From Octopus bimaculoides (lineage: Eukaryota): a DNA stretch of 63,308 bases. The position numbers and the translations under genes are program-made. Positions 3,019 through 56,096 of the stretch are shown piece after piece. The DNA is taken from NCBI RefSeq assembly GCF_001194135.2, contig NC_068987.1:47489494-47552801 (forward strand), given 5' to 3'. How positions within the stretch are numbered: the stretch's first letter is position 1; each line of letters begins with the position of its first letter. Below the pieces are notes generated by a model, which was not told the origin of the DNA, ran no database searches, and saw only the letters and a list, made by a program, of their open reading frames with translations.

Positions 3019-6015
3019 AGGTGAAGATTGTCCTGGATCGACCTGCCTGGGATGGCACATGTCTGCACCTTCCCTACAAATTTCTCCACAACACACGTCA
3101 ACCTTTTGGCTAACATCTTGGCCAAAATCTTTAACTCTACAATAAGTAGAGTTATGGGCCTATAATTACTAATGTTATCCCCCTTGGTTGGATCCTTGTG
3201 GATCAGCGTTACCACTCCCCAACTCACAGAACTGGGAATCCTCCCATTCTATTGCCAGTTTATGTAGACGCTGGCCAACAGGTCCTCGAACAAGTCCGGC
3301 ATACTACAATAAAACTCATGGAGTAGACCATCCAACCCCGGCAACTTATCCCTGGCACACTTGGCCAACACCTCCTTTACCTCCATTGGAGTAATCAGTC
3401 CTTTACAGCATTCTACCTCCATGCTGAGAGTCGCAGCCCACCAGCTAGAAAGTCCTTTAAGGGCTACCTATGCTCAAGCACTCCGCTCTTCCCGAACAAC
3501 TGGGCGAAATGCTGGTGAAAGGCCTTTTGCATCATTTCCTGTCCATAGATCTTGAGCCCCTGTTTGTCAGTTAAAGACTTTATAGAGGCTTTTTTGCCCT
3601 TCTGACTCTTCACACGACATGCCCATCCAGCAATGTTAACACCTTTTCGACCCACTGCATGTAACTTAGCTCTAACTCTGCTGCCTTTGTGTTTGGCTTT
3701 GAGGTGATGGTACAAGGCCGTTCTCACTGCCTGCACTCTAGAAGCAGAGCCAGAGTTCGTAGCCTTGTCTAAATTCTTAACTAGTTCCTTTTCTATTCTA
3801 GATTTATATAAACTTAGCTGATTGCTAAACTCTAAACCAATGACTCTCTTGAGGGTGTGGCACCATCCATTATTAATGATGGCACCACATAGTACCCTCT
3901 GTACTAACTCCTTAATCCAGGCACGGTAGGCTTTACAAGTCAAAATAGACTTGTTCATCTTCCAGTACATGGGTCTCTGTCTATGACATTTATCTATGTG
4001 TACCTCACATGTCACAAATTTGTGGTCTGTGTAAGGTACAATAAAAAATCGTGGACAGCTAAAAGTATTCTTATCTCTATCTCTAATGAATACCCTATCT
4101 ATGTAAGATCTGTGTGAGCCGTCATTATTACTCCACGTCCACTGTGGAACGCTCGGTTCATCCAGTCTGTAATGGTCTACTAGATTATAGCTCTCTAGTA
4201 GACACTTGAGGTCAGGATTTCCTTTCCTATCAGTTGAGCCAACACCATCCACCTGTGCATCGAGGATAGTGTTAAAGTCTCCTGACAGAACTACCGTTTT
4301 TGACATCACTAGAAAGTGCTCCAGGTCTTGAAAAAACCAGACTGCACATGCTCGTTAGGAGTGTAGACAACTACCAGCCTGAAGAACTGTTTACTCTTGT
4401 GGGTCACATCCAGGATGACCGCCCTACCTTCTGGGTCCAGAAAGACAGTACTTACCTGTACATCCAAATTCTTCCTGAATAAGACTACTATGGCCCTTCC
4501 TCCTTGTTGGCTAGGAGCTATAAATTTCTCGTAGTCATTCAAAAGAGGTGAGAACACTTGTGGTCCGCTCATCTTGGACTCAGTTACAATGCACACATCT
4601 ATATCATGTGACCTGAGGTCGTCCAGGAAACAAGTTCATTTCCAGTTCGACCCCAGACCATGCACATTCATGCACCCTAACTTAATTGACATGGTATAAA
4701 AATGTTAAAGGAGTACTTACAGTTTAAGTTCGCCTACCTCCCTATTTTTCTCTTTACTTGGTGTAGCTGCTGGGCTTTTTCCAGGTGTGGCAGCCAGATT
4801 ACAATAAGCCTCCCCTCCACCACATCAGAGCTGACATCTCTTATATACCAACAAATAAAGATTTCATCTCTTATATCCTCAGGATAGTGAGATTTCAGCT
4901 CTGTAAAAAGGGTACCATCCATTTTAGCAAATCTTACATCTTTTGCTGTGTCTTTAGTTTGTTTATAAGTTATCGCCTTGTGATGGTGTTTGATCATTCT
5001 TGCTAACAGTTTGTTATTTTCCTTGAACATCACAATTTTTTTCTTGTATTTTTGGGAGGGGTTTGGTAAATGGTTTTATTATGAGGTTGGACTAGAGAGT
5101 TTCATTTTATGTGTTTGCTGTTGTTGCTTTTGTTGATTTTTTTGTTTGGGGAGGGGAGTCGGGAATGTGAATCTTTTGTGAGTGATTGTGGTGAAGTTCA
5201 TTTCTTCGTTATCTTTACTCGTGTCTGCTTTAGTTTCTATATCGTCTTTTTTGTGTTTCCCTCTTTGCTGTTTGCTTCCTTTGTCATGTTCTTCTTGCTT
5301 GTAGCTTTTGGGGAGGGGCCTCGCCATCTTTTTGGGGGGGGAGATTTGGAACGGACATAGCCTTCTCTCCACATTTGAAGCACCTGGGCCTACGTCCTTC
5401 CACAGTTACCCGCATGGATAGCCCCTTCCCTACAAACACCCTATCGGGAAAATTTTCGAGGGTTGCATTGGCCACTTGAATGACCATTTCTAAGGATTGT
5501 CCTCACCAGTTTACCGCTTCTTTTTTCGTCATTTGTAGGATTGAAATTTCTTCTTCCACATTGTACACTACTGCAGCTGCTACCCACATTACTTCATACC
5601 CTACTGGAATCTTGTCCACTGTCACTTTTGCGGTCCTGCAACCCAAGTAAGTGGGCAGCAGCATTATCTCTTCATTTTTCGACATTTGTGTAGACACCTC
5701 CTTGGCTATGCTAGCTGACTCGAAATGTGCCTCAATTGGGGTGCTTCTTTCTCCTTGGCTAATGTAGTGTACTTTATTCCAGATAGGTGCCATACATTTT
5801 TCCACTGCTTCATTTTTGCATTCATTATACGCTTTTCTTTGATGTTGTAGACTTTGTACACAACTGTTTTCGCATTAATGGCTTGTACTGTCTCAGAGGA
5901 CGGCAACAATTTGGTATCCGCTCCACTATTTTTAATTAGATTTCTAAACTTGAAAAGCTGGTCTTTTGTTACTTCAAGTTCCGTAATGTTGCAGCCCACT
6001 GTGGCTGAAAAACGA
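3019..6015 (-). mobile_element. Tx1/L1-clade LINE copy 1, degraded: ORF1 with Zn-knuckle, ORF2 APE endonuclease and first half of RT; 3' end missing
   Basis: ORF2 starts MSIKLGCMNVHG at 4692. Motifs VVLSGDFNTILD, WTW..SYIDRVF and KDPTKGDNISNYRPITLL..ELKILAK are present. ORF1 fragments include RPRCFKCGEK. Many stops and frameshifts. Confidence 0.85.
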
Positions 6016-8975
6016 ATCAGGGCAAGGGACAACAGTCAGGCAGTAGGTGATGACAGATGCAATAAACACCTGTACCACCTCCTCCCTTCCTTTCAAGGAC
6101 AGAGACCTTCCGGACCAAGTCCGGACTAGTGCCTCCACCTTGTCTTCCACCTCATTCCAATTCTTCTCCGTCTGGAAGTCCGGTCCAAACCAAACTCCAA
6201 GCAACTTAACAGGACCATCTGTCCAGTGACCCATGATACTGGACGATATCGACTTGCTCCTCCAGGTGCTGAGGCACAAGCTGATGGACTTGTCTTTGTT
6301 AACTTTTGCCCCTGCCACTGCCTCATATCCTCTGATAGCATCTTCTACACAAGGTAGCTGTGCTTCATTGGACACGATGAAGGTAAAGTCACCCACATAA
6401 GCAGAAACAGACTTACCACATCCAATTTCATTAGGGTTGCCTCCCAACTTCTCCAACTTCTGCAGCAATGGCGCAAGAGCCAACACATACAGGAGCGGAG
6501 ACAAGGGACACCCTTTAAGAACTGAGTGCTTGATCGAAAACGGCTCCATCAGGTAACTGTTTATCTGGACTGTGGACTTGATGCCACCCACGCTTTACTT
6601 TGGTCTAAATGGACCATTGCCCTTCCTTTGCTGGATAATTTACCAACCCTGTCTAAGGTGTAGTGGATAAGGTGAAGATTGTCCTGGATCAACCAGCCTG
6701 GGATTGCACATGTCTGTGCCTTCCCTACAAGTTTCTCCATTACAGCCATCAACCTTCTTACTGACATCTTGGCCAAAATCTTTAACTCTACATTAAGTAG
6801 AGTTATGGTCCTGTAATTGCTAATACTATCCCACTTGCTTGGGTCTTTCTGGACCACTCCCTGGCTCACAGAACTGGAAATCCTCCCGTTCTGTTGCCAG
6901 TTTGTATAGACTCCTGCCAGTATATCCCTGAACAAGTCCGGCATACAACAATAAAACTCATAGGGCAGACCATTCAACCCCAGTAACTTTTCCCTGGTGC
7001 ACTCGGCCAACACCTCTTTTACCTCTGCGGAAGTGATCAGTCTTTCACAGCATTCTGCCTCATGTGCCGAGAGCCACCCGGCTAAGAAGTCCTTTAAGGC
7101 CTCCCCTTGCTCAAGTGAACTGCCCCCACCGAATAAGTGGGCGAAATGCTGGTGAAAGACTTTCTGCATCTCCTTCTGTCCATAGATCTTGCACCCCTGT
7201 TCATCAGTTAAAGACTTTATAGAGGCATTTTTACCTCTCTGACTCTCCACATGACATGCCCATCCGGCAACGTTAATACCTTCTCGCTTCCCTGCACATA
7301 GCTTAGCTCTAACTCTGCAACTTTCATGCTTGGAGTTGAGGTGACGGTACTAGATCGTTCGGATCTTTTTTAAAACGGGGGCCACATTTTTCATTAATGT
7401 TTTACGTAGTCTTTTTGGTACCGAAAGACTTTCAAACTTCGTATACTTATCTATTTTGTGTTATAGAACAAAAATATTTTTGTATTCGAATTTATTTCAT
7501 GTAAAAAATTGTCTTATTTCGATAATTTCAACCAATCACTGACAAGTATTCAGTTGTTTACATTTACTCCTTTGGCTGATTAAGCGGTGTAAAGCGTATT
7601 TAATTTCCATAGCTTCGTTTTGCTTTTTTTCTTTTTAAATTTGCTGTTTTACCCTAACCCTAACCCTATCACCGATAGAATTGTTTCAGAATCGTTTGTT
7701 TATGTAGTCGGCACTTAATGTATATCGGCTGAATGGACCTCAGTGATTGGTTGAAATTACAGAAATACGACAACTTTAACATGGAATAACTTTATGTGGA
7801 CACCTATGCTACATGGCAGTGAAACATGGACTGTAACTGCAGACGATATGCAAAGGCTCGAAAGAAATGAAGCCTGCTGGATGTGCAACTTCAGTGTGCA
7901 GGTATAGCAAAGATTAAAGAAGACTAAGAGAAAAAGATGTTTTATATGACACATTCTACCAGTGTTCCAAGTTTCAAAGTGTTTCGTTAATGAAAAATGT
8001 GGCCCCCGTTTAAAAAAGGATCCGATCGTTCTCACCACCAGCATTCTAGATGCAGAGCCAGATTCCACAGCCTCGTCTAGGTTCTTAACTAAATCGCCCT
8101 CTATTCTAATCCTATCTAAACTTAGCTGATTGCTAAATCAAATGGACTCTAAATGGATGGCTCTTTTGAGGGCGTGCCACCATCTATTATTAATGATAGC
8201 ACCACATAATGCCCTCTGTATGAAAGGCTTCGCAAGTCAAAATAGACTTGTTCATCTTCCAGTACCGGGGTCCCTGTCTATGACATTTATCTAAATGTAC
8301 CTCACACGTCACAAACTTGTGATCCGTGTAAGGCACAGTACAAAACCGTGGACAACTAAAAGTATTCTTATCTCTTTTCCTAATGAATACCCTATCTAAG
8401 TACGATCTGCATGAGCCATCGTTGTTACTCCACGTCCACTGTGGAACGCTCGGCTCATCCAGTCAGTAACGGTCTACTAGATTAAAGCTCTCTAGTAGAC
8501 CCTTGAGGTCAGAATTCCCCTTCCTATCAGTTGAGTCAACACTATCCCCCCGCGCATCAAGGATATTGTAAAAGTCACCTACTAGAACTACCGTTTTAGA
8601 CGTCACTAGAAAGTGCTCCAGGTCTCAAAAAGACCAGCCTGCCTACACTTTATTGGAGCATAGACAGCCACCAACCTGAAGGACTGCTTACTTATATGTG
8701 TCACATCTAGGTCAACCAGCCTACCTTCTGGGTCCAGAAAGACAGTACGTACCTGTAAGTCCAAGCTCTTCCTGAAAAAGACTGCCACACCCCCTCCACT
8801 TCCTTGGCTAGGTGAAATAAATTTCTCGTAACCATTTAGAAGAGGTGAGAACGCTTGAGGTCTTCTCATCTTGGGCTCGGTTGCAATAGCCACATCTACT
8901 CCATGTGACCTGAAGTCATCCAGGAAACAAGCCTGTTTCCTTTTCGACCCCATTCCATGCACATTCACACAACCC
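6016..8975 (-). mobile_element. Tx1/L1-clade LINE copy 2, degraded: ORF2 endonuclease and RT only, interrupted by a TIR element
   Basis: LGCVNVHG..FLDDFRSHGVDVAIATE; NYRTITLLNVELKILAK; KGCPLSPLLYVLAL; SAYVGD (YADD position); GAKVNKDKS; VKLLGVWF; LSLKGR. Colinear with copy 1. Confidence 0.9.
7361..8023. mobile_element. Non-autonomous TIR DNA transposon (MULE/Merlin-like: GG termini, 8-bp TSD), 663 bp
   Basis: TIR ggatc(c)ttttttaaa(a)cgggggccacatttttcattaa at both ends. Perfect TSD GATCGTTC at 7353-7360 and 8024-8031. The paralogous LINE copy 1 (~3716-3723) shows the empty site. Superfamily assignment is inference. Confidence 0.9.
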
Positions 8976-11949: not shown

Positions 11950-11960
11950 ATGTGTGTGTA

Positions 11961-12021
<61 letters not shown>
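11950..12021. repeat. (TG)n(AG)n compound microsatellite just upstream of the ZNF unit 1 promoter region
   Basis: Direct reading. Confidence 0.95.
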
Positions 12022-12022
<1 letters not shown>

Positions 12023-12089
12023 GTGTACACATACACATATCCATCCATAGAGAAGGTAGTTTCTCTGGTTAGCGATTACATCTCGTACC

Positions 12090-12225
12090 GCCATCCATAG
12101 TTTCAAGAAGTCCTAACACTCCCGTAATAATCCTTCACACCTCTTACTACTTCCTTTCGGTTTAACTTCCCTTGCTGACATCTCTGTCGGCAGGAAAGCG
12201 ATCGTTTCTCCCCAGGTAGGTATGC
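12090..12225 (+). promoter_or_regulatory. Predicted promoter and non-coding exon 1 of ZNF paralog 1 (donor CAG|GTAGGT)
   Basis: Homologous to 39165-39263 and 52279-52363, each upstream of a ZNF CDS and each ending at an aligned GT donor. TSS not determined. Confidence 0.65.
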
Positions 12226-13585
12226 TTCATTCTCTTATCTACCCTCATTTGTATATACAGTCCTGTTGCATACCAATTATACATTAGTTACTAGACATAT
12301 TAACTATAAAACATTTGCAACACATCCATCGCGTCTTCTCAGTCGGTGACGAAGTGTGTGGCTTTGTTTTTCGTCTTGAGATGTTGTGTTGATGGTGGAC
12401 AGAGAGAAAAGATTTGTTGCTGTGATGAGTGTTATCGGTAGGCAACAAGGTTTAATTACAGCAGACTATATAAATCAGACCACACAGTAAATGTGATGAT
12501 ATAAAATAAAGCTCTCCGCCATCAGACAGAGAGGAGAGGTGGTTTTCTTTTGCCACTCTGGCGACCAAGAATTTAACCGTAAGTTATTTATCTGGTCTAT
12601 GCAGGTTCGAATGGCGTTGAAGTCATTCATTTAAATTAGTGAAAGATTTCAATTAACCACCCTCACTATTCTCTTTTCTGATCCACTATGAAATTTTCCT
12701 AGAGCTTTTAATATAAATCTGTCTTGGATTACTGTAATCTTTTTACTAAAAAATTTAATCCCATTAATATTCTCACATTGTTTTAAAACTAACCTCTCCT
12801 ATACAATATACTCAACGACCTTCCCCCTTTTTAATATTGTTTCTCCTTTATTATTCTGTTTATTGGCCTCGTTATTATTGTTGTTTAACTATATGAGTAC
12901 ATTTGTTGTTGTCGATGATGATTGTATATATGTTTTTATTAGAGCAGAGTATTTTAACCTTCATCTTTGCTTTCCGTTAACAATCAAATGGTCATATTTT
13001 CTCCGCGTGTCCGTCTATGTATTTTTATTACTGTTCATTTTTGCAGTACTTTTGCCTGGAGGTTGCCCTAACCTCTCTCTCTCTCTCAGCAAATAGAATA
13101 ATTGCGGAAAGGCTGGCAACAACGATTGCTACTCCGTTGCATAGTCCACTCCCACCAATTCTCTGATCAAAGCAACTTCCATGTTCGATGTCTTCCAAGT
13201 TGGCCAGACGTGTTTATTTGATAATTCTCACCAATTTCTGTACATAATACTCAACACAAGGGGAGGTAGACTGGAGGTCATTTAGGCATTGTAACACCCA
13301 TTTTATATCACTGACCATACAAAGATATCTATGTCTCCCGCCCACCATTCTTCACATTCTCATGTTTTTTCTTTTTACCTAAGGTCGGTACCGTTGTATT
13401 TCATATGGATCCAACGAACGAAAATAACTGACCGGACATAGCAGAGGCATATGCATCTTTAATTAACCCTATAAAAAAATATAAAAACCACTTCACTTAT
13501 ATTGAAGTTAAATAAGCAAGTGTATTAGTGTGGTACACACATGACTCAGTGGTCCAGTATCTAGCTCCACCACCAGACCTCGTGG

Positions 13586-13619
<34 letters not shown>

Positions 13620-14099
13620 TACACACACATATATCTCCGTTTTTGTAAAGATTAGCTTTTATCCTTCACATTTTCTCAATATTTTGTCTGTGTGTACTAT
13701 CAGCTCTAGGATTCAGGAAATTTTCCTTCTCGGCCACCGGAATCCTGGTACTGTGTCTTACTATACACACACACACACACACACACACACTTTATTAACA
13801 ACGCATTTTTGCATTATTAATCATGAGTTTTAAGAATCTATCACGAATTTCTTTGTATTCGTTTGCTCACTACGAATTGAACACGTCGATCTCATCATCT
13901 GATGCCCTTGTGACAAATAATAGAAATCATTACGATAGTAGGATGGTGAGAAGAGATTCCCACTTTAGGATTGCGGCATCATGGACGGTCAGTTCCTCAA
14001 GTTCAAAGCCATTGAAAGTTGCTTTCCCTTTTCTCCATTAGTTAATAATAATGATTTTGTTTTGAAGTGATACCACTTCACATTTTTATAAAAGGCGGA

Positions 14100-14670
14100 T
14101 ATAGTTGATTGCACCGACTTCGTTACTTAACTGTTTTTATTTTATCAACTGTGGAAGGATTTGAACTCAAAATGTAGCGGAAGGAATCTAGGCGCTGTCA
14201 TTCTACTCACTAACCTTCGCAGAGTTATTAAAAACAATAATAATAGTTCTTTATTTGCAACAAGGGGGATATTAATGATTTCTAACTTTGGTACAAGACC
14301 CTCACATTTTGGAGGAAGAATACGGTCACTTAAATCGACCTGATTGGTATTTTATCTTTTGAAGGGTCGTTAAAGCGTCCGATAAAATGCGTTTCGGTAT
14401 TTCTATCCTGCTCTTTATGTTCTGGTTTCAAATCACGCTGAGCTCAACTTTGCCCTTCTTCCTTTCAGGATCGATAAAATGAGGCACCAGTCAGGTATTG
14501 GGCTCGATGCTTTCTGTTTATATGTAAAACAGTTATTTTATCAACGCGTGTTTGATGAAAGGTGATGTCGACCCCCAGCGAAATATGAACTTAGAATGTA
14601 AAGGGGCATAACTAAAATACTAGGTGACATCTAGTCTTGTACTCTATTTCTGCCAACTCACCACTCAATA
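14100..14670. mobile_element. Cluster of degraded tRNA-derived SINE family B fragments
   Basis: Repeated ttctg.gttcaaat..ctcaactttgcc.ttc.tcctttc.gg.tcgataaaat motifs in both orientations. Confidence 0.6.
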
Positions 14671-16409
14671 ATTGCAATGGACGGGGGCAGTCTATAAAGA
14701 TAGACAACTAACTGTATACACTGTTAGATTACGGCCTGTATTATTTACGTTTCAAATAATCTATAGAAACAATCCCTCCGAAAAGTAATTTGAACCTCTT
14801 AACCAACTTCGAACCTACGTAGAACAATTTTATGCGTAAAAATCTAACTGGGCTTTTAATGATTGGATTTAGTCGGTTATTTGTAGCAGATTACCGATGA
14901 TAGATGTTATTAATTAGACCGTTACTATATCTACTTTAAACAGCTGCCATACTCGATATTATAAATATACTGCAACCATTATTGGCTAAACGAAAATGGG
15001 AAGTATTGACTGGGCGGGGTGGGATGAAGGCTCCTTAATCCCAGCATTTCCACCTAGTTGGTTGGTCCCATCTGTTAATGGACTCAGGTAAAGCCAGGTT
15101 TTTAACTGGTATTTTGTCGGTTTATTTAATGGCTATAACTGCATTAAAAGCTGAATATTCAAAGCTGCTTCGGGGCAAAATACTTTTCTACTTTAACATT
15201 ACCCCTCCCGTCCCCTTTTCACCCACTTATCTGCCCACTACTTTTTGTTCTTTCTCTCTCTCTCCACCTGACCTGCCTAAATTCTTTTCTCCCTTTTCGT
15301 TTCTCCCTTTCTCACTCTCACCACTCTCCTTTTCTTTCTCCATCATCTCACATATCTCATAATCTCCCTCTTACTTCCACCGTATCGCTTCATAACTTTC
15401 TTTCCTCATCTCCTCTTTTAGCCCTTCACGTCTCCTCCTCTCTCTTTTACCTCACCCTTTTTTATCGCTCTCTCTCTCTCTCTCATCAAGTCACATCTCT
15501 TTTACCTCACCCTCCATCTTACCCCTTCTGTCTTATTAACTCTCCCTTTTTCCTTATCACTTTTTCCTTATCACCCCTTCTGTCGTACCTCACCCTCTAT
15601 ATTACAAGTTAATTACTATCTGAAACTGATTTCCGGCAATGTGTGCGTGCGTGCGTGTTTTCTTCCCTCATTCCACAAGTATGTAGGTTGGTAGGGACAA
15701 CATTGTGCTTCTGGGAAGGAAATACAACCTTGAAACATCAGCTTGCATTTGAAACACCCAACTGTAGCTTTTCCCTCGTAACGTTGCTCAGCTCCTTGGC
15801 CGTAATTAAACAATATCAGCTATGTTGTTGTCAGCTGTTATTTAGCATGGTTTGGAGAATATAAATCCAGCTATGATCCAGTTGCTTATAGATAAGGTAC
15901 CGTAACTTTATTAAGTAAACCACATCGATTACTCCCTCTCTCGCAACATATTTGATACTTCTTTCTCTGAAGCCAAACTCTCTTGATTAGAGATTAATTC
16001 TATCTGTTGAGTAACTGAACCGTGTATTCCTTTCTTACCAGGGATATATTCTCCCTCCACATTGTTATAAGAAGTTGATTCGTTGGTTCCTCCACCTTCA
16101 AATTTACTGCCTACAAGTAATGTGGACTGAGATTGTTTCTTTAAAAAAAAAAACGAGAAACAATCTAGTTGTCAACGTACGAAAGAAAACTCATTACCTA
16201 ATGAACGCGGACATAGACGTACAGTTAAGAAATTCGTTTCGCACCTTTGTGCTTCCGAGTTCGATTCTAGTGCGCTACATCTTGAGCAGATATCTTTTAC
16301 AGTACGCTTACGTTGAAAAATGTTTTGTGGGTGGAATTTAATCGACCGAAACTGGGGGAAATAATCGTGTGTATGTGTTTATGTATTGTTTGTAGTGTAA
16401 AGCACCGTT

Positions 16410-16745
16410 TAATGTCTTTTCCATGCATGCATAGGTGAAACGGATTTTGTTGAAGCAGATTTTCTACGGCTGGGTGTTCTTCTTGTCACCAACCCTCGAC
16501 CTGGAAACCAGCATCGCTTGTATGATGGTGATGCTCGTTTACAACAAACCGTGACGCTAAGTCACAATGCACACATTCATCATCATCATTTAACGCCCGT
16601 TTCAGTTTCTCTCTACGAAACCCACTCATAAGGCTTTGATTGGTCTAGCCCTTCAGTAGAAGACACCCTTGGTGTCATACAGTGGGACTGAACCCAAGAC
16701 CACATGGTTGGGAAGCAAGATTACTTCTCAACCACACAGTCACAT
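16410..16745 (-). mobile_element. SINE family A head with RTE-type tail (A2 form)
   Basis: Head gtggttgagaagtaatcttgcttcccaaccatgtggtcttgggttcagtcccac. Similar copies at 23905-24345 (-) and 47590-47870 (+). Confidence 0.65.
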
Positions 16746-18107
16746 CAGTATCTATGCGGAGCTATAAACAAAGTAGTGGAGATGTATATGGATCTAACAG
16801 TGTTGTATACAGCCAGGCCTGTCTAGTATCATATGTTCCATCTGTGACCATATTGTTTTTCCTTTTTTTTTGTTTGATTTTCAGTCATAGAATATCAAGG
16901 ATTTGGACTACATCATCTAATGTGTCCTTCCTTGTTTATGACATTAGAATGAGATTTGGTTTATATTTTTAGCAGCTTGAGAAACTTAGGTAAAGCTCCC
17001 TCATTGCTACTGTTATTGTTTAACCTGTGCTGTGATGCATAAAAGGCACATATGCTGGTGACAGGTAAAGGACACCCAGTATACTCTGTGGAGTGGTTGG
17101 CATTAGGAAAGGCATCCAGCTGTAGAAACTAAACCAAAACCGACTGGAGCCTGATGCAGCACTCCGGCTTTCCAGTTCTGGTCAAACTCTAGCCCATGCC
17201 AGCATGGAAAATGGATACTGAATGATGATGATGATGACAGGTCAGCCCTGATGCAGCAGATCTCAGTGTTGATCAATAATGTATCTAGCACTGTGTTATC
17301 TAATGTGTCCTTTCATGATTAAGAGACTAGAGGAGGTTTGACCACTACTACTTATAGGTGGAATGAACAATAAGAGACATCCTCATTGGATTGATTGTCA
17401 GCATGTGTTTTAAGGACATGAAAAGAAAGTGTTAATTAGGAACTGTACTTAAATGATGGAGGGAATGGAATTGTGAGCTATAGTTTACCTGACCAAAATG
17501 TACACTGAGAGGATGGTATTTGTTTGCATTTTGTGTGGCATAGATGATTCCTGTTACATGGTACAGTACAGTGTTTCTCATGGGAAAAGGCCTGTGATAA
17601 TTGAAAAGAGGAGCAGACTGCATCATCATCATTGTTGACTAATGTCCACTTTTCCATTGTTGCATGAATCAACAGAATCCATTGAAACAGATTTTCTTCA
17701 GCTGAATGCCCTTCCTGTTACCAACCAAGCAAAGTAGTATATTTCCCTCATGCCCAGACATGATTTTCACAGAATACTGAAAATAAACAACATTGCTTAT
17801 ATGACAGTAATGCTCATTTACAACTGTTACATGAGCTACAGACAAGGGTGCACGCATGTGCAAGAGTGCATTTTGCACCAAAAGCCAATATGAGAGTTTC
17901 TCTCTTGGTATCTTTTGCAGTATAGTTTGTTCTAACAGAACATTCATGTTTAAGTGGGAATAAATATTACATCTCAGTATTAATACTGCCTCTGTTGCTA
18001 ATATATATTTTTATACACTTAAAGTCCCAGCTGACCAAAGCCTTGTCATGGATTTGGAAAAAAAAAAAAAANNNNNNNNNNNNNNNNNNNNNNNNNNNNN
18101 NNNNNNN

Positions 18108-21240: not shown

Positions 21241-21512
21241 ATTGACTAATGTATGTTTGTCAAAGATATAAACTGGATGTGTCTGCAAAGCATTTGTTTG
21301 ATTTGAAGTATCCTGTCTCATATTATCTTCCTATTATGTGATGTACCTTTAAAGAAATAATAGCTTTAGCATTTCCTATTTGTATTGTTTGAAATGTTCT
21401 GAAACAGCACAATTAAATGATACATTTCTTTATATTTCAGTACCAAGTGCAACTTGTTGAAGAATCAGACGTATAACTCAGTGATCATTAAAGAGAGATT
21501 TACTTCTGAAAA

Positions 21513-22232
21513 ATGGAATTGTTGCCAGATTCTGAAGCTGAGCCATACTACTGTGGAGTATGTGGCAAAGAATTTCTTGTTCATGCATTATTGGAGAAAC
21601 ACTTGAAAACCCATACAGTAGAGAGACGTTTCTCTTGTGACATCTGCGGGAAAGACTTCTTGAAAAACTCTCACCTGACAAGACACATAAGAACACACAC
21701 GGGAGAGAAGCCTTTCCACTGTGACATCTGCGGCAAGGATTTCTCCGAGAATTACACCTTAAAAAACCACATAAAAACGCATACTGGAGAGAAACCTTTT
21801 CATTGTGATATATGTGATAAGGATTTTACTGAAAGATCCACATTGAAAAAACACCTGAGGATCCACACCGGAGAAAAGCCTTACCATTGCACGTTGTGTG
21901 GGGATAGCTTTACAGACCATTCTACTTTAAGATGTCACTTGAAGAAACACACAAGAGAAGAAAAATCATTCCAGTGCGAGACCTGTAGCAAGAATTTCAC
22001 TACTAAAGCCGCTTTGAAAGGCCACATTCGAATACATAAGAAGGAGAAAACGTTTCCTTGCAAGGAATGTGGGAAAGAATTCTCACTTAGCCTCCAATTA
22101 AAGGCACACATGAAAACACACGCCAAACCTGAGCCACAGTTGAAATCGAATATTTTACGCTGTAAGATATGCGGGGACAACTTTCTGGACAATGTTGCTT
22201 TAACAAGTCATCTAAGAATACATAGAGACTAA
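21513..22232 (+). CDS. C2H2 zinc-finger protein, 8 fingers, 239 aa, no KRAB/SCAN/BTB/ZAD domain (paralog 1)
   Basis: 8 x CxxC-x12-HxxxH with TGEKP-type linkers. Strong start context aaaATGG with an in-frame TGA two codons upstream. Acceptor tttcag| at 21440. Confidence 0.95.
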   Translation: MELLPDSEAEPYYCGVCGKEFLVHALLEKHLKTHTVERRFSCDICGKDFLKNSHLTRHIRTHTGEKPFHCDICGKDFSENYTLKNHIKTHTGEKPFHCDICDKDFTERSTLKKHLRIHTGEKPYHCTLCGDSFTDHSTLRCHLKKHTREEKSFQCETCSKNFTTKAALKGHIRIHKKEKTFPCKECGKEFSLSLQLKAHMKTHAKPEPQLKSNILRCKICGDNFLDNVALTSHLRIHRD

Positions 22233-30100: not shown

Positions 30101-31221
30101 AAGTTAAGGCAACTCGCCAATGTAAGATGGGTACACTGTATAAATTATCTTGTTTCTTGTAGCTATGAGCGAGTAGTAAAAGTCCACTCTAGGAGATAGT
30201 TCTTTGGAAATCTTGTAGATGCTATATGTACAAGTTAGTCGGCGTTTAAGATTCATTGATGAAGTTTTTACCTCTAGTTAACAGAATATTACTGTCTATT
30301 TTCGTTATTTTTTTTAATGTCTGTAGTCCACACCCGTCTATCAGTCTCAGGGGAAATAACTCCAGTTGGTTATGATACTAAAAAAAATTTAGAAGTTTCA
30401 ATTTGCTCATCTGTAGTAACAGTAAATTCGAAGACATGATGAAGTATTTATGTATCTAATAGAGAGTGATTACCTTGGAATAGATTATCCTGATATTAGA
30501 TTTAAATCTTAGGAAATCCTTTCATGAATCCGTTTATTTGTACAACCTAGAAGAAAGCCAGGGCTCACACCAGTGTAGGGGCAAGACCAAAGGAAAAGGA
30601 CAACAGCCAAGAGAAATGGATGGCACTTATCAGTTTGAATTTTCACAAGTTGATCAGTTCCATGTTAACTGTGACTGGGCAGATTATGAGCACAGAGATC
30701 CTGATTTTAAAGGTAATATCTAGGACTACATTATCCAATTCTCATTTTCAAGCAAGTAGGAAGAGCTTTGTTTATTGTTTTCAGCTATTCATGTGACAAC
30801 ATAGAGGCGACCTTGTTGGTTTCAAGGAAAAGAAATTTCAGAATATAATTTACATTCATAATATTATTTATAATATTGCAAGCTCTGATACCTCAACATT
30901 CAAGGTGGAATGTTTCTTTAAACCTTTTGAGACCATACCTGGTTTTATAATAAAAACGTTCTGTTCAAAGTGATCTAAATAAAAATTTTCTGTCAAAATT
31001 TCATAATTTAGGTTTCTATCTAACATCAGCTGAATAATGACATTAATTTTACAAAATTCTTCACTATTTTAAAGATTAATCGAAGCAAAGGCAGTTTATT
31101 TCAACAGAAATGTGATAATGAAAGGATTGACTGAAAATTATACTTCTGTCCAGCTGCTTATAAATTTCAGTTTTGTGAATGTCTGTATAAGAGCATTAAG
31201 AAATAGTTTTATGGAAAGGCG

Positions 31222-34724: not shown

Positions 34725-35575
34725 ATCGTTTAATGTCCGCTTTCCATGCTAGCATGGGTTGGACGATTTGACTGAGGAGTGGCAAACCAGATGGCNNNNN
34801 NNNNNNNNNNNNNNNNNNNNNNNNNNNNNNNNNNNNNNNNNNNNNNNNNNNNNNNNNNNNNNNNNNNNNNNNNNNNNNNNNNNNNNNNNNNNNNNNNNNN
34901 NNNNNNNNNNNNNNNNNNNNNNNNNNNNNNNNNNNNNNNNNNNNNNNNNNNNNNNNNNNNNNNNNNNNNNNNNNNNNNNNNNNNNNNNNNNNNNNNNNNN
35001 NNNNNNNNNNNNNNNNNNNNNNNNNNNNNNNNNNNNNNNNNNNNNNNNNNNNNNNNNNNNNNNNNNNNNNNNNNNNNNNNNNNNNNNNNNNNNNNNNNNN
35101 NNNNNNNNNNNNNNNNNNNNNNNNNNNNNNNNNNNNNNNNNNNNNNNNNNNNNNNNNNNNNNNNNNNNNNNNNNNNNNNNNNNNNNNNNNNNNNNNNNNN
35201 NNNNNNNNNNNNNNNNNNNNNNNNNNNNNNNNNNNNNNNNNNNNNNNNNNNNNNNNNNNNNNNNNNNNNNNNNNNNNNNNNNNNNNNNNNNNNNNNNNNN
35301 NNNNNNNNNNNNNNNNNNNNNNNNNNNNNNNNNNNNNNNNNNNNNNNNNNNCTGGCTACACATCTGGCAGAGGCCTTGGATTTTGGTCTCACTTGGCTTG
35401 CTGGGTCTTCTCATGCTCAGCATATTTCCAAAGGTCTCGGTCAGAAGTCATTGCCTCGGTGAGGCCTAATGTTCGGAGGTCGTGCTTCACCACCTCGTCC
35501 CAGGTCTTCCTGGGGCCAGGTCTTCCCGGGGCCAGGTCTTCCTGGGGCTAGGTCTTCCTGGGGCTAGGTCTTCCT
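34725..35575 (-). mobile_element. RTE 3' fragment spanning an assembly gap, with a 16-bp tandem array at its 5' truncation
   Basis: Tail at 34700-34795, KTWDEVVKHDLRTLGL region at 35400-35510, array at 35500-35575. Confidence 0.8.
34796..35351. other. Assembly gap (other gaps: 18072-18107, 36243-36252, 38227-38362, 41316-41340, 42007-42567, 53328-53413)
   Basis: Runs of N, mostly next to microsatellites. ORF calls spanning them are artefacts. Confidence 1.
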
Positions 35576-36240: not shown

Positions 36241-36257
36241 TANNNNNNNNNNATATA

Positions 36258-38226: not shown

Positions 38227-38381
38227 NNNNNNNNNNNNNNNNNNNNNNNNNNNNNNNNNNNNNNNNNNNNNNNNNNNNNNNNNNNNNNNNNNNNNNNNNN
38301 NNNNNNNNNNNNNNNNNNNNNNNNNNNNNNNNNNNNNNNNNNNNNNNNNNNNNNNNNNNNNNTATATATATACTCTTTACT

Positions 38382-39164: not shown

Positions 39165-39263
39165 GTCATCCATAGCTATGGTTGCTATCCAATTGCCGGT
39201 TCTCTTTTTTAAACTTCCCATGCTGACATCTCTGTCGGCAGGAAAGCGATCGTTGCTCTCCAG
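39165..39263 (+). promoter_or_regulatory. Predicted promoter and exon 1 of ZNF paralog 2 (donor CAG|GTATGT)
   Basis: 34 nt identical to unit 1 (39221-39254 = 12173-12206); aligned donor. Confidence 0.65.
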
Positions 39264-40119
39264 GTATGTACGGTACACTTCATTCGCGTATCTATCCTCA
39301 TTCGTATTAATAGTCCTGTGCATACTAATCATACACCAGTTACTCGACGTATTAATTGTAAAACATTTGTAACACTTCATCACGTCTTCTCAATCGATGA
39401 CAAAGTGTGTAGGTTTTTTTTTAATTTTTCCTTTTTTTTTTTTTTGTCTTGAGATGTGTTGACGGACAGAGAAATGTTGTTGGTGTGTTGGTGTCGGTAG
39501 ACAGACAGGGCGACCTCATAGTAAAACTACAAGACATCAAGATCGACAGAGAGAAATGGTGTGACATGGTCTGGGATTTGGACAAGAGCTATTTGTCTGG
39601 TCAATGTGGGTTCGAATTGTGTTGAAGTCAGTCATTTAGATACCTTGTAGGTTTTAATTAATCACCCACCCTCTTTTCTCACCGATTACGAGTTTATCGC
39701 AGAGCCTTTAACGTAAATATGTGTTGGATTACTCTAATCCTCACATAGAAACCTCAGTTAATCCCCTAATGTTTATGTTTTGGCATATGGTCACCTCCCG
39801 CTATAGATTATATTATCAACGACCTTTCCCCATTTTCATATTGTTACCCTGTCTGCCATCTGTTTCTCTGATCTGGGCGGTGTCATTAAACATTGCTTAT
39901 GTTGTTGTTGGTGCTGTAGGTGGTCTGATCGTTGTTGGTGTTTCAAGCCCCAAGCCAGTCTTGAACAATGGTCATCTTGTCTTATTTTCGGACAGTGCAT
40001 GTAGATTGCTAACGCTGTTATTGTTGTTGTTGGTGATAATAATGATGATGGTGGTGGTGAGGATTAAATATTGGGCGTTCCTCTTACAAGCATCAATGTT
40101 ACTATGTTACTGATACGTT

Positions 40120-40320
40120 GGTTATAATAGTGTTGGTGATGGCGGTGTAGTGGTGGTGATGATGATAGTGGTGATTATAATGGTGGTGGTGCTGGCGATG
40201 ACGACAATGATGGTAATGATGATGATTGCGATGGTGGTGCCGCTGCTAGTGATGATATTGGTGATGGAGATTGTTATCTTGAAGCAATTGGAGGTAATTG
40301 TAGTGATGATAGTTGGCTGA
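40120..40320. repeat. (GAT/GGT)n low-complexity tract
   Basis: Direct reading. Confidence 0.85.
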
Positions 40321-40962
40321 AAAGCCTACTATTATTAATATTAGTAGTAAGGTGGCGAGCTGGTCGAATCGTTAACATGCCGGACAAAAGGCTTAGCGGC
40401 ATTTCGTCTGTCTTTATGTTCTGAGTTCAAATTCCGCCGTGGTCGACTTTGCCTTTCATCCCTTCGGCGTCGATAAAATAAGTATCAGTTGAACATTGGG
40501 GTCGATGCAATTGACTTACTCCTTCCCTGAAATTGATGGCCCTGTGTCAAAAATTGAAATTATTACTATTATCAAGAGCATTCCAGTTGGAACCATACTG
40601 TTTTTTTCTTTTCTTTTTTTTTTTGTTTGTTTCCTGATATATATTTAAGATAACTTTCTCCAATGTGTTGTTTTTTTTTCTTTTTAAGACAGTAATTTAA
40701 CCTTCCACATTTTTGCCATCAACAGTTGCCCTTATGAGCCTTGTACTATACAATGTCAACCAATCATCAATCACAATAGACCCTATACTCCCTTACTGCA
40801 TCCTGAATAGATAACTACACTTTTAAGCTATTAAACCTACCTATTTCCTAAGCTGCTTTGTGAGTGTACTATAGAGTAACAAAAAGTTTCACATTCCAAG
40901 AATTTTGCTTAGTAATAGTAGTAGTAGTAGTAGTAGTAGTAGTATATTTATATATATATTAT

Positions 40963-42976
40963 ATACTAGCAGAAATACCCGGCTTTGCCAGGGTTAAAGA
41001 GAATAATGAAATCTAAAAACGCCGTCTAGACTACGCAACCCTCAACTGTTAGTAGCTACGATACCATATTTCTACATTAATAACTCTCCAATCCATGCCA
41101 GCATGGAACATAGATATTAAGTGGAATGCTAGAAGAAAGTTTTCAACTCATATGTATATAAAGTAAATACACGTAATTCAGAAACACGTTTTGTGTATTT
41201 TATTTCGTAACCAAACAAACAGGTACAGATTATAAATAATGAAAGGCCAATTTTGGTGATTCATTTGACAGAGGTAGTAGAGAGACAATGCGATGATAAA
41301 TCTGAGGTTGGATCTNNNNNNNNNNNNNNNNNNNNNNNNNTATATATATGTATATCAATATAAATATATGAAAGTCAATGAAGTTTCGTAAAAGAAGGTG
41401 ATCATGTACATACTTTCTTGCTGTTGTGATTATAACACCTCGTTGTAAACAATGTTCCTTGTTTTCCCCTGTGGAGCATATACAAATAGGTTTATTTTGC
41501 TGCCCACTCTTGAGCAGCCAACATACAGTTGTCCATGTGAGAAGCAGGGCTCTTCCAAGAGAAGACCAGCTACAGACAGTGCTCATCTGTTATGTTCGGG
41601 TTAAAATTTCATCAAAGTAGGTCTGCAACGAAATAATTTTACTCAACACTTTGCAAGTGAATCAGTGACAATTTATGCACATTGCAGAAATCACAATGTA
41701 AGTATATCTGAAAGGGTAGTCTTACACTGTTGTACCGTTGAATTACAAATAATGCTCATCTGTTATGTTCGGGTTAAAATTTCATCAACATCCAAAATAT
41801 ATGAATTTTCATGGGAGCTATGGCCGTTATGCATAGAATATAATTTCCAAATTTCATAAAGATCCATTCAGTACTTTTGACATAGTTTTGGATAAGAAAA
41901 CAAATGACTAATGTGTGTGTTTGTGTGCATGTGTATGTGTGTGATGGGTGTATATATGTATAGATATCTGTATGCATGTATATATATGTATGTGTACATA
42001 TTACAANNNNNNNNNNNNNNNNNNNNNNNNNNNNNNNNNNNNNNNNNNNNNNNNNNNNNNNNNNNNNNNNNNNNNNNNNNNNNNNNNNNNNNNNNNNNNN
42101 NNNNNNNNNNNNNNNNNNNNNNNNNNNNNNNNNNNNNNNNNNNNNNNNNNNNNNNNNNNNNNNNNNNNNNNNNNNNNNNNNNNNNNNNNNNNNNNNNNNN
42201 NNNNNNNNNNNNNNNNNNNNNNNNNNNNNNNNNNNNNNNNNNNNNNNNNNNNNNNNNNNNNNNNNNNNNNNNNNNNNNNNNNNNNNNNNNNNNNNNNNNN
42301 NNNNNNNNNNNNNNNNNNNNNNNNNNNNNNNNNNNNNNNNNNNNNNNNNNNNNNNNNNNNNNNNNNNNNNNNNNNNNNNNNNNNNNNNNNNNNNNNNNNN
42401 NNNNNNNNNNNNNNNNNNNNNNNNNNNNNNNNNNNNNNNNNNNNNNNNNNNNNNNNNNNNNNNNNNNNNNNNNNNNNNNNNNNNNNNNNNNNNNNNNNNN
42501 NNNNNNNNNNNNNNNNNNNNNNNNNNNNNNNNNNNNNNNNNNNNNNNNNNNNNNNNNNNNNNNNNNNCTCTTTCTCTCTCTTTCTCTCTTTCTCTCTTTC
42601 TCTCTCTCTCTCTCTTTCTCTCTTTCTCTCTTTCTCTCTCTCTTTCTCTCTTTCTCTGAAAGTATCTGTCATTACAGTATCGAAATGTGAATGTTTCAGT
42701 TAGTAGAATAGTTTCATTTTTAAAGTGAAAGTATTTGACATGAGTGTTTTTGTTTCACTTTTGACACGTAATACTTAAATAGTGGAGGAGATATTATGTT
42801 GCCGTGGGCTCGAACTCTGCAAGAAGTTAAAAAAATTTTTTTTGACTAAACCACAACTGTAACCCTAAGTAAGGCATCTGTAAAATTTGAATGAAATTGG
42901 TTGCGTAGTTCTCGAGTTTTAGGGATTCACACAGACAGACAGACAGACACACATTGTCATTTTTATATATATAGAT
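40963..42976 (+). mobile_element. Non-autonomous Helitron-like (Lep1-type) pieces across gaps
   Basis: 5'-like tactagcagaaatacccggctttgccagggtt and 3'-like aaatttgaatgaaattggttgcgtagttctcgagtttt..(acag)n..tttttatatatatagat. May be more than one element. Confidence 0.5.
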
Positions 42977-45291: not shown

Positions 45292-46162
45292 TTGTAGACA
45301 AACAAAGTTCATTTCACGATATTATATAGATGTGTTTTTCTTTAGATAGAGAGTGAATTTCTGTTGATGTATTGGAGTAATGAACTAGTGTTATATATTT
45401 TGCTGACAGTCAGGTTATAACAGAATCAGTTGAAATCATTTACATGACAGAAGGACAGTATCAGAGAAGTTATACTTCAGTGCTCATGACTGTCAGCTCT
45501 CTATTGTGTTTAGTTGTCAGTTCACTGCTCACTGACCTCTGACTCATCAAGTCTGTCTCTGTGTTCATTATTCTTTTTATCAGCTGTGAATAGAATTAGA
45601 GCTTGACTGATTTTCAAGCAACAATTTTGGATTCATTAGAATTTTTGCTGTCATCAGTCAAAGACTTTAATGTGTAACAATTGAATATCATTGGTTAGAT
45701 TTTTTTTGTGACGTCATCACATCCAGGAGTTGCTTTATCCAGATTCCAAAACTTTCTAGAAAACTTTGAACAGATTTTTGCTGACATGACAAAATACTGG
45801 TTACAGCCTTTGTGTTTGAAAACCAAAACGTTCCAAGTCTGAATCATGGTATAGATCTACTACACATATATCGTAGATTTTGGTCTTATAATGAGATGGC
45901 TTCTCTAATATCAATTCCTTCTTTGTAGCTTAGATAATTGTTTTATGTAGATAAGAAGATTTACTAAAGGACACTTTGTAGTGTCTGTGTTAAGATTTCA
46001 AACTGATTTAGAAATAGTTTATTGTTTCTCCATTTGAACAATTTGAAATTAAGTGAAACAGTGCTACTAAAGGAGTCTTTTCCTTTATTTCAGTACCAAC
46101 GATCATTTGCAAATGAAACACAAGAGTAACCGACATTGAGCTCTCAGATCTATCTCTAAAAA

Positions 46163-46867
46163 ATGGACTTATTGGCAGAATCTGAAGCCGAACCATACTA
46201 CTGTGGAGTATGTGGCAAAGATTTTGTTCATATTGTACGACTGGAGGAGCACATGAAGGTACATACTATAGAGAAACGATTCCCTTGTGAAATATGTGGA
46301 AAGAACTTTTCAAAAAATTCTGACCTCTCAAGACACATAAGAACACACACAGGAGAAAGACCTTTCCGCTGTGATATCTGTGGTAGAGACTTCTCCATGA
46401 ATTATAACTTAAAAAATCATTTAAAGACCCATACTGGTGAAAAGCCATATCAATGTGATATTTGTGATAAATACTTTACTGAAAGATCCTCTTTGAGGAA
46501 ACACATCAGGATTCATACAGGAGAAAAACCTTACCATTGCACAACATGTGGGGACAGTTTTACAGATTATTCTACATTAAGGACTCATTTAAGGACTCAC
46601 ACAGGAGAAAAACCATACCATTGTGAGATCTGTGGTAAAGATTTCACTGCAAATTCCTCCTTGAAAAGTCACATTCGGACACACAACAGGGAAAAGCCAT
46701 TTATCTGTAAGGAATGCGGTAACGGATTCTCATTCAAAGTTCATCTTAGAGAACATGTGAAGGCACATAACAAACCTGAACCAAGCCCTTTACGTTGTAA
46801 GATATGTGGAGATAACTTTGTGGATGATGTTGCTTTAACAAGTCATTTAAGAATACATACAGAGTAA
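46163..46867 (+). CDS. C2H2 zinc-finger protein, 8 fingers, 234 aa (paralog 2)
   Basis: Finger-for-finger colinear with paralog 1. aaaATGG start with in-frame TAA two codons upstream. Acceptor tttcag|tacca at 46093. Confidence 0.95.
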   Translation: MDLLAESEAEPYYCGVCGKDFVHIVRLEEHMKVHTIEKRFPCEICGKNFSKNSDLSRHIRTHTGERPFRCDICGRDFSMNYNLKNHLKTHTGEKPYQCDICDKYFTERSSLRKHIRIHTGEKPYHCTTCGDSFTDYSTLRTHLRTHTGEKPYHCEICGKDFTANSSLKSHIRTHNREKPFICKECGNGFSFKVHLREHVKAHNKPEPSPLRCKICGDNFVDDVALTSHLRIHTE

Positions 46868-52278: not shown

Positions 52279-52363
52279 GCTCTCCATAGTTTTAGCTTTC
52301 CTTTCTGTTTCCAGTCCAGCTTTTCCTAACTTCCTGTCGGCAGGAAGGCGCCGATGCGTTCTG
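52279..52363 (+). promoter_or_regulatory. Predicted promoter and exon 1 of ZNF paralog 3 (donor CTG|GTATGT)
   Basis: tagcatgtct..tccatag and ctgtcggcaggaa are shared with units 1/2; aligned donor. Confidence 0.55.
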
Positions 52364-53596
52364 GTATGTTCATGTCGTTCTTTCTCATCTCCCCCATTAT
52401 CTATATAGTCCTATTGTACTTGCATTATACGCCAGTTGTTAGACATATTAGCTGTATTATATTTATAGCTATTCACTAACTCTATTCTACTGATGACGAA
52501 CTGGTTTCCTTTGTTTGATGTATGGGATGTGTTGTTGGTGGTCAGTGACAGCTGTTGATGTGGTTGTTGTTGTATGATGTAAATGTAGAGGGACAGTGTA
52601 TCTCTCGTTGACTAAATAATTACACTCACACACTCTACTACAGTATTCACTTCTTGAACATCTTTATTTATTCTCTATAAATAGTAATAATATCTAAAAT
52701 GAATAGAATTATTCGGAGGCTTGAATTAAGAGAAAGATGACAAAATAATTTCCATTAACAGTTAAATAATCAAAAAGGTAATTAGAAAATGATAAAAATA
52801 GAACCGACACAAGACAAACGAAGATTCATCTCGAAAAAGTAATATTTACTACATAAATACAGCACACCTAATTGAAGGACCTCCCTATCCCCTCCGTGAA
52901 AGTGTCCCTTTAATGGTGTGACCAACTCTTATAAGGTTAACCGCAAGGTAGAGCTAATGGAATGTCACTAACACGTATCTTAGATGGACGTGTTTCGAAT
53001 ATTGGGTGAAGGAATCTGATTATTCATTCTAGGTTAGATTTTTTTCGTCGCATACCTATCAATGTTAGTCTTCTCTATTACCAGGTACCCTGCATCTAGG
53101 TCAGTTATTGTTTCAAGTTAGAAATGCTGTTGTGTGGCTGAGCAGTTAGGACCTCCCTCTAACCATCTTTAAAACACAAACCCATTGACTAATATAGTCT
53201 ATGCTATATTATGCCTGAAAGAGAAAAAAATGACGAGAATGGCTACAACTGTAATGCCTTGATCATAGGTCAGCACGATCAAAGCTGACAACTCTCTCTC
53301 TCTCTCCCTCCCCCTCCTCCTCCCTCCNNNNNNNNNNNNNNNNNNNNNNNNNNNNNNNNNNNNNNNNNNNNNNNNNNNNNNNNNNNNNNNNNNNNNNNNN
53401 NNNNNNNNNNNNNCTCTCCTGGGGAGGGTTTGAACTCTGCATTGTACCTAAAGGAAAATAACGTCAGTTATGCAGTGGCTCTTACTTCTGGCAGAAGTGA
53501 ATGAACTACGTTAATTATCATGGATGGGGGCTGGCTGAAGTTACCTTCGCTGGAGACAATATGGCAAGACTGGTGGTTAGATACAAACCTTAAACC

Positions 53597-55411: not shown

Positions 55412-55490
55412 TGACATCTCTGCTATTGTGGTGTATGTGACAAGGACATTATCCATATTTTTATTCCTGGAAGATCTCATGAAGGCACAC
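55412..55490 (+). pseudogene. Decayed finger 1 of paralog 3
   Basis: YCGVCDKDIIHI in one frame behind an in-frame TGA at 55412, a +1 shift at the T-run 55458-55462, then LEDLMKAH (first His replaced by Leu). Confidence 0.8.
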
Positions 55491-56096
55491 ACTTCAGCAA
55501 GACGTTACCCATGCGAAACATGTGGCAAAACATTCTCACAAAATTCCCATCTTTCAAGACACATAAGAACACATACAGGAGAGAAGCCTTTCCGCTGCGA
55601 AGTCTGTGGCAAGGGCTTCCCTGAGAATTATACATTAAAAACCCACATGAAAACCCACACAGGAGTGAAACCTTTCCATTGTGATATATGTGATAAAGAC
55701 TTTACTGAAAAAGCCACATTGATAAAACACACACGCAGCCATACAGGGCTAAGACCCTACAGCTGTGAAACCTGTGGGGACAGTTTTGCAGATCATTCTA
55801 CTTTAAGAACACACATAAGAACTCACACAGGAGAGAAACCATACCATTGTGAGATTTGTGGGAAAGACTTTGCAGTCCATTCTAACTTCAAAAAACACCT
55901 TCGAATCCATGCCCGACAACAAGAATTATTCCAGTGTGAAAATTGCGGGGAAAAATTCTCTCATAGATTTTATTTAATGAAGCATGTGGAAACACATGCA
56001 CCAAAATCCATTACACAACTGCGTTGTCAGATTTGTGGTGACAATTTTATTGATAGTGTTGCTTTGCAAAGTCATTTAAAGATTCATAATGATTAG
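55479..56096 (+). CDS. C2H2 zinc-finger protein, 7 intact fingers (paralog 3; finger 1 decayed, start inferred at an internal Met, 205 aa)
   Basis: Open frame colinear with fingers 2-8 of paralogs 1 and 2. The ancestral ATG region is lost. True start is uncertain. Confidence 0.8.
   Translation: MKAHTSARRYPCETCGKTFSQNSHLSRHIRTHTGEKPFRCEVCGKGFPENYTLKTHMKTHTGVKPFHCDICDKDFTEKATLIKHTRSHTGLRPYSCETCGDSFADHSTLRTHIRTHTGEKPYHCEICGKDFAVHSNFKKHLRIHARQQELFQCENCGEKFSHRFYLMKHVETHAPKSITQLRCQICGDNFIDSVALQSHLKIHND

Follow-up and report, generated by a model that had tools for sequence, protein, structure and literature searches.

In a tandem cluster of C2H2 ZNF genes in Octopus bimaculoides, each duplicate appears to carry its own promoter-proximal region with a first non-coding exon, of which a short block shared by all three units would be the best-preserved piece. 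On balance we consider it somewhat probable that units 1 and 2 were homogenised across this region at a time later than the duplication of the unit but earlier than the O. bimaculoides/O. vulgaris split, and that the homogenised tract, block included, has drifted neutrally since. Homogenisation would most likely have occurred by gene conversion (non-allelic recombination) over ~ 215 nt comprising the 3′ part of exon 1, the donor site and the start of intron 1, at an age of perhaps 2–3 times the depth of the species split. Any activity of the block would most likely reside at the DNA level, in promoter-proximal factor sites with TTCC and GGAA cores, an RNA stem being unlikely.

The window (the whole 63,308-nt stretch of DNA analysed, in which all positions below are counted unless stated otherwise) is part of O. 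bimaculoides chromosome CM046607.1 (GCA_001194135.2) and contains three tandem ZNF units on the same strand, with ORFs consisting of C2H2 fingers only and two intact ORFs located at ~ 47.51 and ~ 47.53 Mb of the chromosome. The ZNF exon of unit 1 (21441–22232, + strand, acceptor tttcag/TACC) contains a CDS at 21513–22232 encoding 239 aa with eight C2H2 fingers. That of unit 2 (46094–46867, + strand, acceptor tttcag/TACC) contains a CDS at 46163–46867 (234 aa), and that of unit 3 (55346–56096, + strand, acceptor tttcag/AATG) an ORF at 55428–56096 with seven fingers counted from the Met at 55479. The ancestral start codon and finger 1 are missing from unit 3 (55346–55480), where a TGA stands before CYCGVCDKD and a 1-nt frameshift follows into the long ORF; the unit may be a recent pseudogene or else a gene shortened at its N-terminus. 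Scans of ZNF1 and the unit 3 ORF found neither a KRAB nor another N-terminal domain. Very large lineage-specific C2H2 expansions are characteristic of cephalopod (coleoid) genomes, and the octopus ZNF genes belong to a cephalopod lineage expansion independent of the vertebrate one (PMC9068888).

LINE reverse-transcriptase fragments and assembly gaps separate the units. The gaps (N runs at 18072–18107, 34796–35351, 36243–36252, 38227–38362, 41316–41340, 42007–42567 and 53328–53413) appear in six-frame listings as long ‘ORFs’ of X, which are artefacts. Upstream of unit 1, a LINE-type element is present as broken ORFs on the − strand (3464–7250); two ORFs at 5974–7250 match the reverse-transcriptase family RVT_1, one of them below Pfam’s cutoff, and a 281-aa ORF at 3464–4309 (− strand) gave no Pfam match.

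Homologue searches were dominated by vertebrate and insect poly-ZNF proteins, the useful matches being the O. vulgaris ortholog of ZNF1 (P0001), an unrelated O. vulgaris ZNF (P0042) and one Argonauta ZNF; a chimeric N-/C-terminal ZNF profile yielded no useful homologues, and none of the window proteins was present in the protein-cluster collection consulted. P0001 led to O. vulgaris locus L005, which is collinear with window positions 11678–40965 and carries both blocks. Comparisons of the block were based on five copies, namely O. bimaculoides units 1–3 and O. vulgaris units 1–2; no ZNF2 ortholog is annotated in O. vulgaris. The P0001 gene model itself (405 aa; L005 10001–25506, corresponding to approximately 21.5–33 kb of the window) splices the last ZNF1 finger to a downstream DUF4371/FAM200-ZBED5-like (hAT transposase-derived) fragment, and is probably a chimeric annotation.

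The ZNF1 protein is identical between O. bimaculoides and O. vulgaris (239/239 residues; L005 10001–10717) with 12 silent differences and a fourfold-degenerate divergence of 10%, which indicates that selection, where present, is detectable at this species distance. A third octopod, more diverged and known from Logan contigs alone (L002/L003 426–1145), has the same protein sequence. Purifying selection of this kind is unusually strong for a member of a tandem ZNF cluster. The same contigs (L002, L003) were considered as possible transcripts and rejected, as they have an unspliced intron, low-complexity repeat ends and an origin in that third species; being genomic, they provide no splicing evidence.

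An earlier note on this DNA had described the duplicated unit as a promoter, a non-coding exon 1, an intron and a single ZNF exon. Sequence features agree with that layout, in which exon 1 and the TSS remain predictions. The putative non-coding exon 1 occupies 12090–12215 in unit 1 (+ strand; donor CAG/GTAGGT at 12215/12216, in alignment with the donors of units 2 and 3 and of the two O. vulgaris copies), 39166–39263 in unit 2 (+ strand; donor CAG/GTATGT at 39263/39264) and 52281–52363 in unit 3 (+ strand; donor CTG/GTATGT at 52363/52364). Aligned GT donors were thus correctly proposed by the note, as were the junction coordinates 39263, 52363, 21441, 46094 and 55346; the unit 1 donor had been placed at 12225 and needs moving to 12215/12216. 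Polypyrimidine/AG acceptors (tttcag, ending at 21440, 46093 and 55345) are aligned in all units; in units 1 and 2 they precede the ATG by ~ 70–80 nt, and the unit 3 acceptor has an equivalent location. Donors are conserved in all five copies, and both GT donors and acceptors are kept in O. vulgaris. Paralog similarity between units 1 and 2 begins ~ 80 nt upstream of the acceptor, and the 5′ paralogy begins shortly upstream of the block, a copy of which is located 3–9 kb upstream of each ZNF exon. We infer that the tract may be transcribed and spliced as exon 1.

Local peaks of CpG o/e are present at all three sites (0.65–0.9, 1.0–1.6 and 0.65–0.8, compared to 0.33 for the window overall). Elsewhere, CpG o/e exceeds 1 at 7200–7800, 13600–16600 and 40100–40650, the largest of these stretches lying inside intron 1 of unit 1. 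They contain no long ORF and gave no family match, and could be young insertions or unmethylated regions. A coding role of the tract, sense or antisense, was rejected, as the frame of its short ORFs changes from unit to unit. Upstream ATGs are confined to units 2 (two ATGs) and 3, and the 64-aa ORF that spans the unit 2 block had no record in an exact-protein look-up.

The block itself, reported earlier as 34 identical nt, holds up at 34/34 between 12173–12206 in unit 1 and 39221–39254 in unit 2 (both + strand), and the identity goes no further in either direction; the hairpin arms discussed below lie at 12173–12192 and 39221–39240. In unit 3, a remnant reading AACTTCCTGTCGGCAGGAAGGCG is found at 52328–52350 (+ strand), with a 7-bp palindrome at 52330–52347 and an ambiguous homology of the 5′ arm, and the unit retains CTGTCGGCAGGAAgGCG. 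Deletion of the top of the stem in unit 3, as had been suggested, is recovered in one alignment (a 14-nt deletion) and is absent from two others, which show a diverged 5′ arm instead. The longest exact run in unit 3 is 13 nt (CTGTCGGCAGGAA) and falls inside the same block, at P ~ 0.18, which is not significant alone. The (C/T)CCATAG motif said to precede the block was recovered as TCCATAG in all three units, at a variable distance of 50–89 nt.

Searching with the 17-mer CTGTCGGCAGGAAAGCG from the block (up to three mismatches allowed) gave three matches in the window, at 12184, 39232 and 52334, the last with one mismatch, compared to 0.03 in shuffled sequence. A profile search with the tract, run over ~ 120 kb of octopus DNA (the window, L005 and L006), added no copy to those already known. 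Each ZNF unit of the window and of O. vulgaris L005 has a single copy, and L006, the other, unrelated O. vulgaris ZNF locus (n = 1), has none, the block being absent there within ± 10 kb. Interpretation of the block as a dispersed repeat or transposable element was rejected on the grounds that no copies unlinked to ZNF units occur in these ~ 120 kb. A metagenome scan for the block gave no matches, as expected, and a literature search turned up no account of promoter or leader elements in cephalopod C2H2 genes.

Extensive synonymous divergence between ZNF1 and ZNF2, which had made the 34-nt identity appear striking, was confirmed, with 17 of 43 fourfold-degenerate sites (39.5%) differing. The identical run has P ~ 1e-4 when set against the whole 343-column alignment (70% identity), and P ~ 0.03 within the enclosing 82%-identical tract, still somewhat longer than expected.

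This block is the best-kept part of a tract of ~ 215 nt (12161–12371 in unit 1 and its counterpart 39209–39422 in unit 2, both + strand) with 82.9% identity between units 1 and 2, which extends from the 3′ half of putative exon 1 across the donor to ~ 155 nt into intron 1, and is likely a gene-conversion tract. Similarity common to all three units extends from ~ 25–50 nt upstream of TCCATAG to ~ 160–200 nt past the donor, unit 3 being ~ 61% identical to units 1 and 2 over the tract. Boundaries of the tract are discrete, with high identity from ~ 12160 to ~ 12375 falling off on both sides. The left edge is sharp near 12160, inside the putative exon, which fits homogenisation; farther upstream, unit 1 has extra sequence that aligns poorly to unit 2. 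As a neutral yardstick we used an intron segment at 12582–12841 (+ strand), collinear with 39587–39845 and 70.1% identical between units 1 and 2; it is present only at collinear sites, and is thus not a dispersed repeat. For the ZNF exon, short flanks included, identity between the same two units is 72.7%.

Several local features adjoin these segments. A (GT)n(GA)n microsatellite at 11950–12052 lies next to the unit 1 tract, and a second copy of CCATCCATAG at 12043–12052 precedes the copy at 12091–12100 by ~ 45 nt. A perfect 12-nt palindrome, CCATAGCTATGG, at 39170–39181 is confined to unit 2 and is conserved in O. vulgaris (L005 ~ 30214–30225). The collinear intron segment of units 1 and 2 contains a tRNA B-box-like GGTTCGAAT at ~ 12640–12650 and ~ 39645–39655, and this piece may be an old SINE predating the duplication; no further copies of the segment bearing it were found in ~ 120 kb.

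Between paralogs, 31 of 210 sites (14.8%) are substituted in the tract compared to 134 of 366 (36.6%) in the distal intron, i.e. divergence in the tract is 2.5 times lower. Between orthologs divergence is not lower, at 27/413 (6.5%) in the tract and 43/752 (5.7%) in the distal intron. Low paralog divergence combined with ordinary ortholog divergence is a signature of homogenisation, by gene conversion or by secondary partial duplication, rather than of purifying selection maintained over time. Gene conversion rather than selection, an outcome that the earlier note had itself envisaged, is thus close to the data, and its main proposal of a shared, selected control element of the cluster found no support in this comparison, as both block and tract change at a neutral rate between O. 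bimaculoides and O. vulgaris.

For the tract as a whole, 27 ortholog differences were seen against a neutral expectation of 23.6, and constraint of at least 1.5-fold was rejected (P = 0.006). The 46 nt that lead from the first position of the block up to the donor were identical in the ancestors of units 1 and 2; here five ortholog differences were counted in 2 × 46 nt, compared to 5.3 expected, with P = 0.033 for constraint of at least 3-fold and P = 0.0045 for constraint of at least 5-fold. Mild constraint, below approximately 2-fold, acting on the 34–46 nt of the block would be compatible with this test of two species and three paralogs.

Site patterns in the four-way alignment date the event. 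In the tract, 17 sites were orthologous, two concerted and one other; in the distal intron, the corresponding counts were 111, 0 and 1. By the time of speciation units 1 and 2 had therefore become distinct, which places homogenisation before the split; any conversion is mostly of that earlier age. One of the two concerted sites lies inside the block and is a T/C difference at a CpG, which can be read as either parallel CpG mutation or continuing short-tract conversion. Conversion as the mechanism would account for the contrast between paralog and ortholog rates.

Interlocus gene conversion at the 5′ ends of tandem duplicates has a textbook case in the human Gγ/Aγ globin pair. The octopus units resemble that pair in having a discrete 5′ tract which is far more alike between tandem paralogs than the rest of the unit, and which is no more conserved than neutral DNA between species. 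They differ in that the tract is short (~ 215 nt) and predates the species split, and in that the mechanism is deduced from rates. Clustered vertebrate poly-ZNF (KRAB-ZNF) genes, for their part, have a shared non-coding 5′ leader exon and a CpG-rich promoter. Common to those clusters and to the octopus units are the tandem arrangement, a short non-coding exon 1, a long first intron, fingers contained in one exon and a 5′ region retained in duplicates. Unlike the KRAB-ZNF proteins, the octopus proteins have C2H2 fingers only, without KRAB or another N-terminal effector, and their exon structure is predicted.

The hairpin and the pair of inverted ETS-core sites that the earlier note read into the block were both re-examined. 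On folding, TGCTGACA-tctc-TGTCGGCA does give an 8-bp stem with one G-U pair, and CUUCCUG-ucgg-CAGGAAG folds in unit 3 at 52330–52347. The hairpin is present in the MFE and centroid folds of all copies and on its own reaches ~ −11 kcal/mol in the unit 1 centroid. Fold z-scores of the five short segments were −1.35, −3.67, −1.66, −2.53 and −1.98, the value of −3.67 belonging to unit 2. Hairpins of comparable grade (8 bp, at most one G-U pair, low complexity excluded) number 146 on the + strand of the window. The covariation that had been looked for in a selected stem did not materialise in the five-sequence alignment, where none of 12 pairs showed a compensatory change and eight departed by unpaired cells only, a test of low power. 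The stem changes in O. vulgaris, T>C at the pair closing the loop in both units and A>C at the outer pair in unit 2, are all uncompensated. Rfam gave no match at the block at the gathering threshold in a search of the window, and none at E ≤ 1 for the block in units 1 and 2. Spurious mir-297/SCARNA7 matches in Rfam were restricted to the GT/GA microsatellite. No sign of a hidden small RNA or miRNA was seen in the conserved intron start, where the consensus fold was −8 kcal/mol and its covariation term positive.

Invariance across all five copies is limited to the TTCC and GGAA cores (AACTTCC and GGAA). The ETS consensus is (C/A)GGAAGT. Read against that consensus, the 5′ site (read on the reverse strand) is GGGAAGTT in units 1 and 2 and AGGAAGTT in unit 3, and the 3′ site is CAGGAAAG, CCGGAAAG or CAGGAAGG across copies. 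The cores are 22 nt apart in units 1 and 2, and 10 nt apart in unit 3. The inverted-ETS proposal is left with its invariant cores; the flanks appear to fit the ETS consensus poorly and the block-to-donor segment changes at a neutral rate. Maf (TGCTGAC half-site), TALE (TGACA) and STAT (TTCN3GAA) readings were dropped, the spacing being unfit and part of the sequence not being kept in unit 3.

Among competing explanations, selection on opposed GGAA-core sites near the TSS, read by an ETS-like or other GGAA-binding factor and keeping the paralogs of a small ZNF subfamily co-regulated, is in our view doubtful, though it has several observations on its side. AACTTCC and GGAA do not change whereas the intervening bases do; changes beside the 3′ core approach the canonical ETS site (CAGGAAA to CCGGAAA in O. 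vulgaris unit 2, CAGGAAA to CAGGAAG in unit 3); the longest exact match of unit 3 to units 1 and 2 falls here; the 34-nt run exceeds what the tract average predicts; and the local CpG o/e peak is as expected of an unmethylated promoter. The long run within the tract, the best match of unit 3 and the invariant cores would be expected if a factor site were under weak selection, and weak selection on the GGAA cores may have operated at a level that two species and three paralogs leave room for. However, the block-to-donor segment is neutral between species, the spacing is not conserved, GGAA/TTCC 4-mers often arise by chance, the block is missing within 10 kb of another octopus ZNF gene, and the match to ETS is limited to 4-nt cores, the flanks GGGAAGTT and CAGGAAAG being apparently poor. 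ETS/GABP-type GGAA sites occur in TATA-less core promoters, and the octopus block resembles these in having two GGAA cores on opposite strands, near the presumed TSS and invariant in five copies. It departs from them in that the match consists of 4-nt cores only, in a diverging arrangement (TTCC...GGAA) with long and variable spacing (22 or 10 nt), and the cores are candidate sites. A broader version, in which TTCC...GGAA is a lineage-specific cis-element marking the starts of an octopod C2H2 subfamily and co-regulating its members through a dimeric factor site or a leader hairpin, strikes us as quite improbable; if it were true, the neutral-looking rate between two close species would reflect low power.

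The RNA-stem reading fares worst in comparison with the DNA-site reading, and a functional hairpin in the 5′ leader of the ZNF mRNA, acting on translation, stability or splicing, is highly improbable. Its credit lies in the recurrence of the hairpin in all copies, with the strong z-score of unit 2 (−3.7), in the 7-bp stem still possible in unit 3 from the same 3′ arm region, and in its position 10–25 nt upstream of the putative donor. Against these stand the lack of any compensatory change among the 12 pairs, three independent stem-weakening changes in O. vulgaris, z-scores of only −1.35 to −2.53 in the other four segments, the 146 hairpins of equal grade on the + strand, the missing Rfam family, the neutral substitution rate and a transcription of the stretch that is predicted only. 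The centre of symmetry also differs in unit 3 (TCGG compared to TCTC), so that its hairpin is not the same structure as in units 1 and 2. The idea of a selected RNA stem, as the earlier note had offered it, could not be sustained on the grounds of rate, uncompensated changes, commonness of such hairpins and want of an Rfam match. Iron-responsive element-type 5′-UTR hairpins are likewise small stem-loops in a (here presumed) 5′ leader; the octopus block differs from them in having no Rfam match, no covariation and no conserved loop or bulge signature, with a structure not kept in unit 3. At the opposite extreme, the tract could be a non-functional relic of the duplicated segment that is alignable by chance, with the ZNF exons transcribed from promoters nearer the ORFs. 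The predicted status of the exon 1 junctions, neutrality of the whole tract between species and the low identity of unit 3 (~ 61%) are consistent with this. We nevertheless hold it to be unlikely: a GT donor in good context is kept in all five copies, a polypyrimidine/AG acceptor precedes the ATG by ~ 70–80 nt in all three ZNF exons, the similarity of units 1 and 2 starts ~ 80 nt upstream of that acceptor, CpG o/e peaks coincide with all three sites, and the tract is among the few non-coding pieces of the unit that can be aligned in all three.

A shared control element of cephalopod C2H2 genes would be useful for understanding ZNF regulation. The ordinary alternative, in which tandem duplicates bring their promoter and leader exon along and part of this region is homogenised, is most likely, and as the evidence favours it, the block is not a promising handle on ZNF regulation. 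Identity between paralogs is by itself no proof of selection. The observations support annotating a predicted non-coding exon 1 located 3–9 kb upstream of the single-exon ZNF ORFs.
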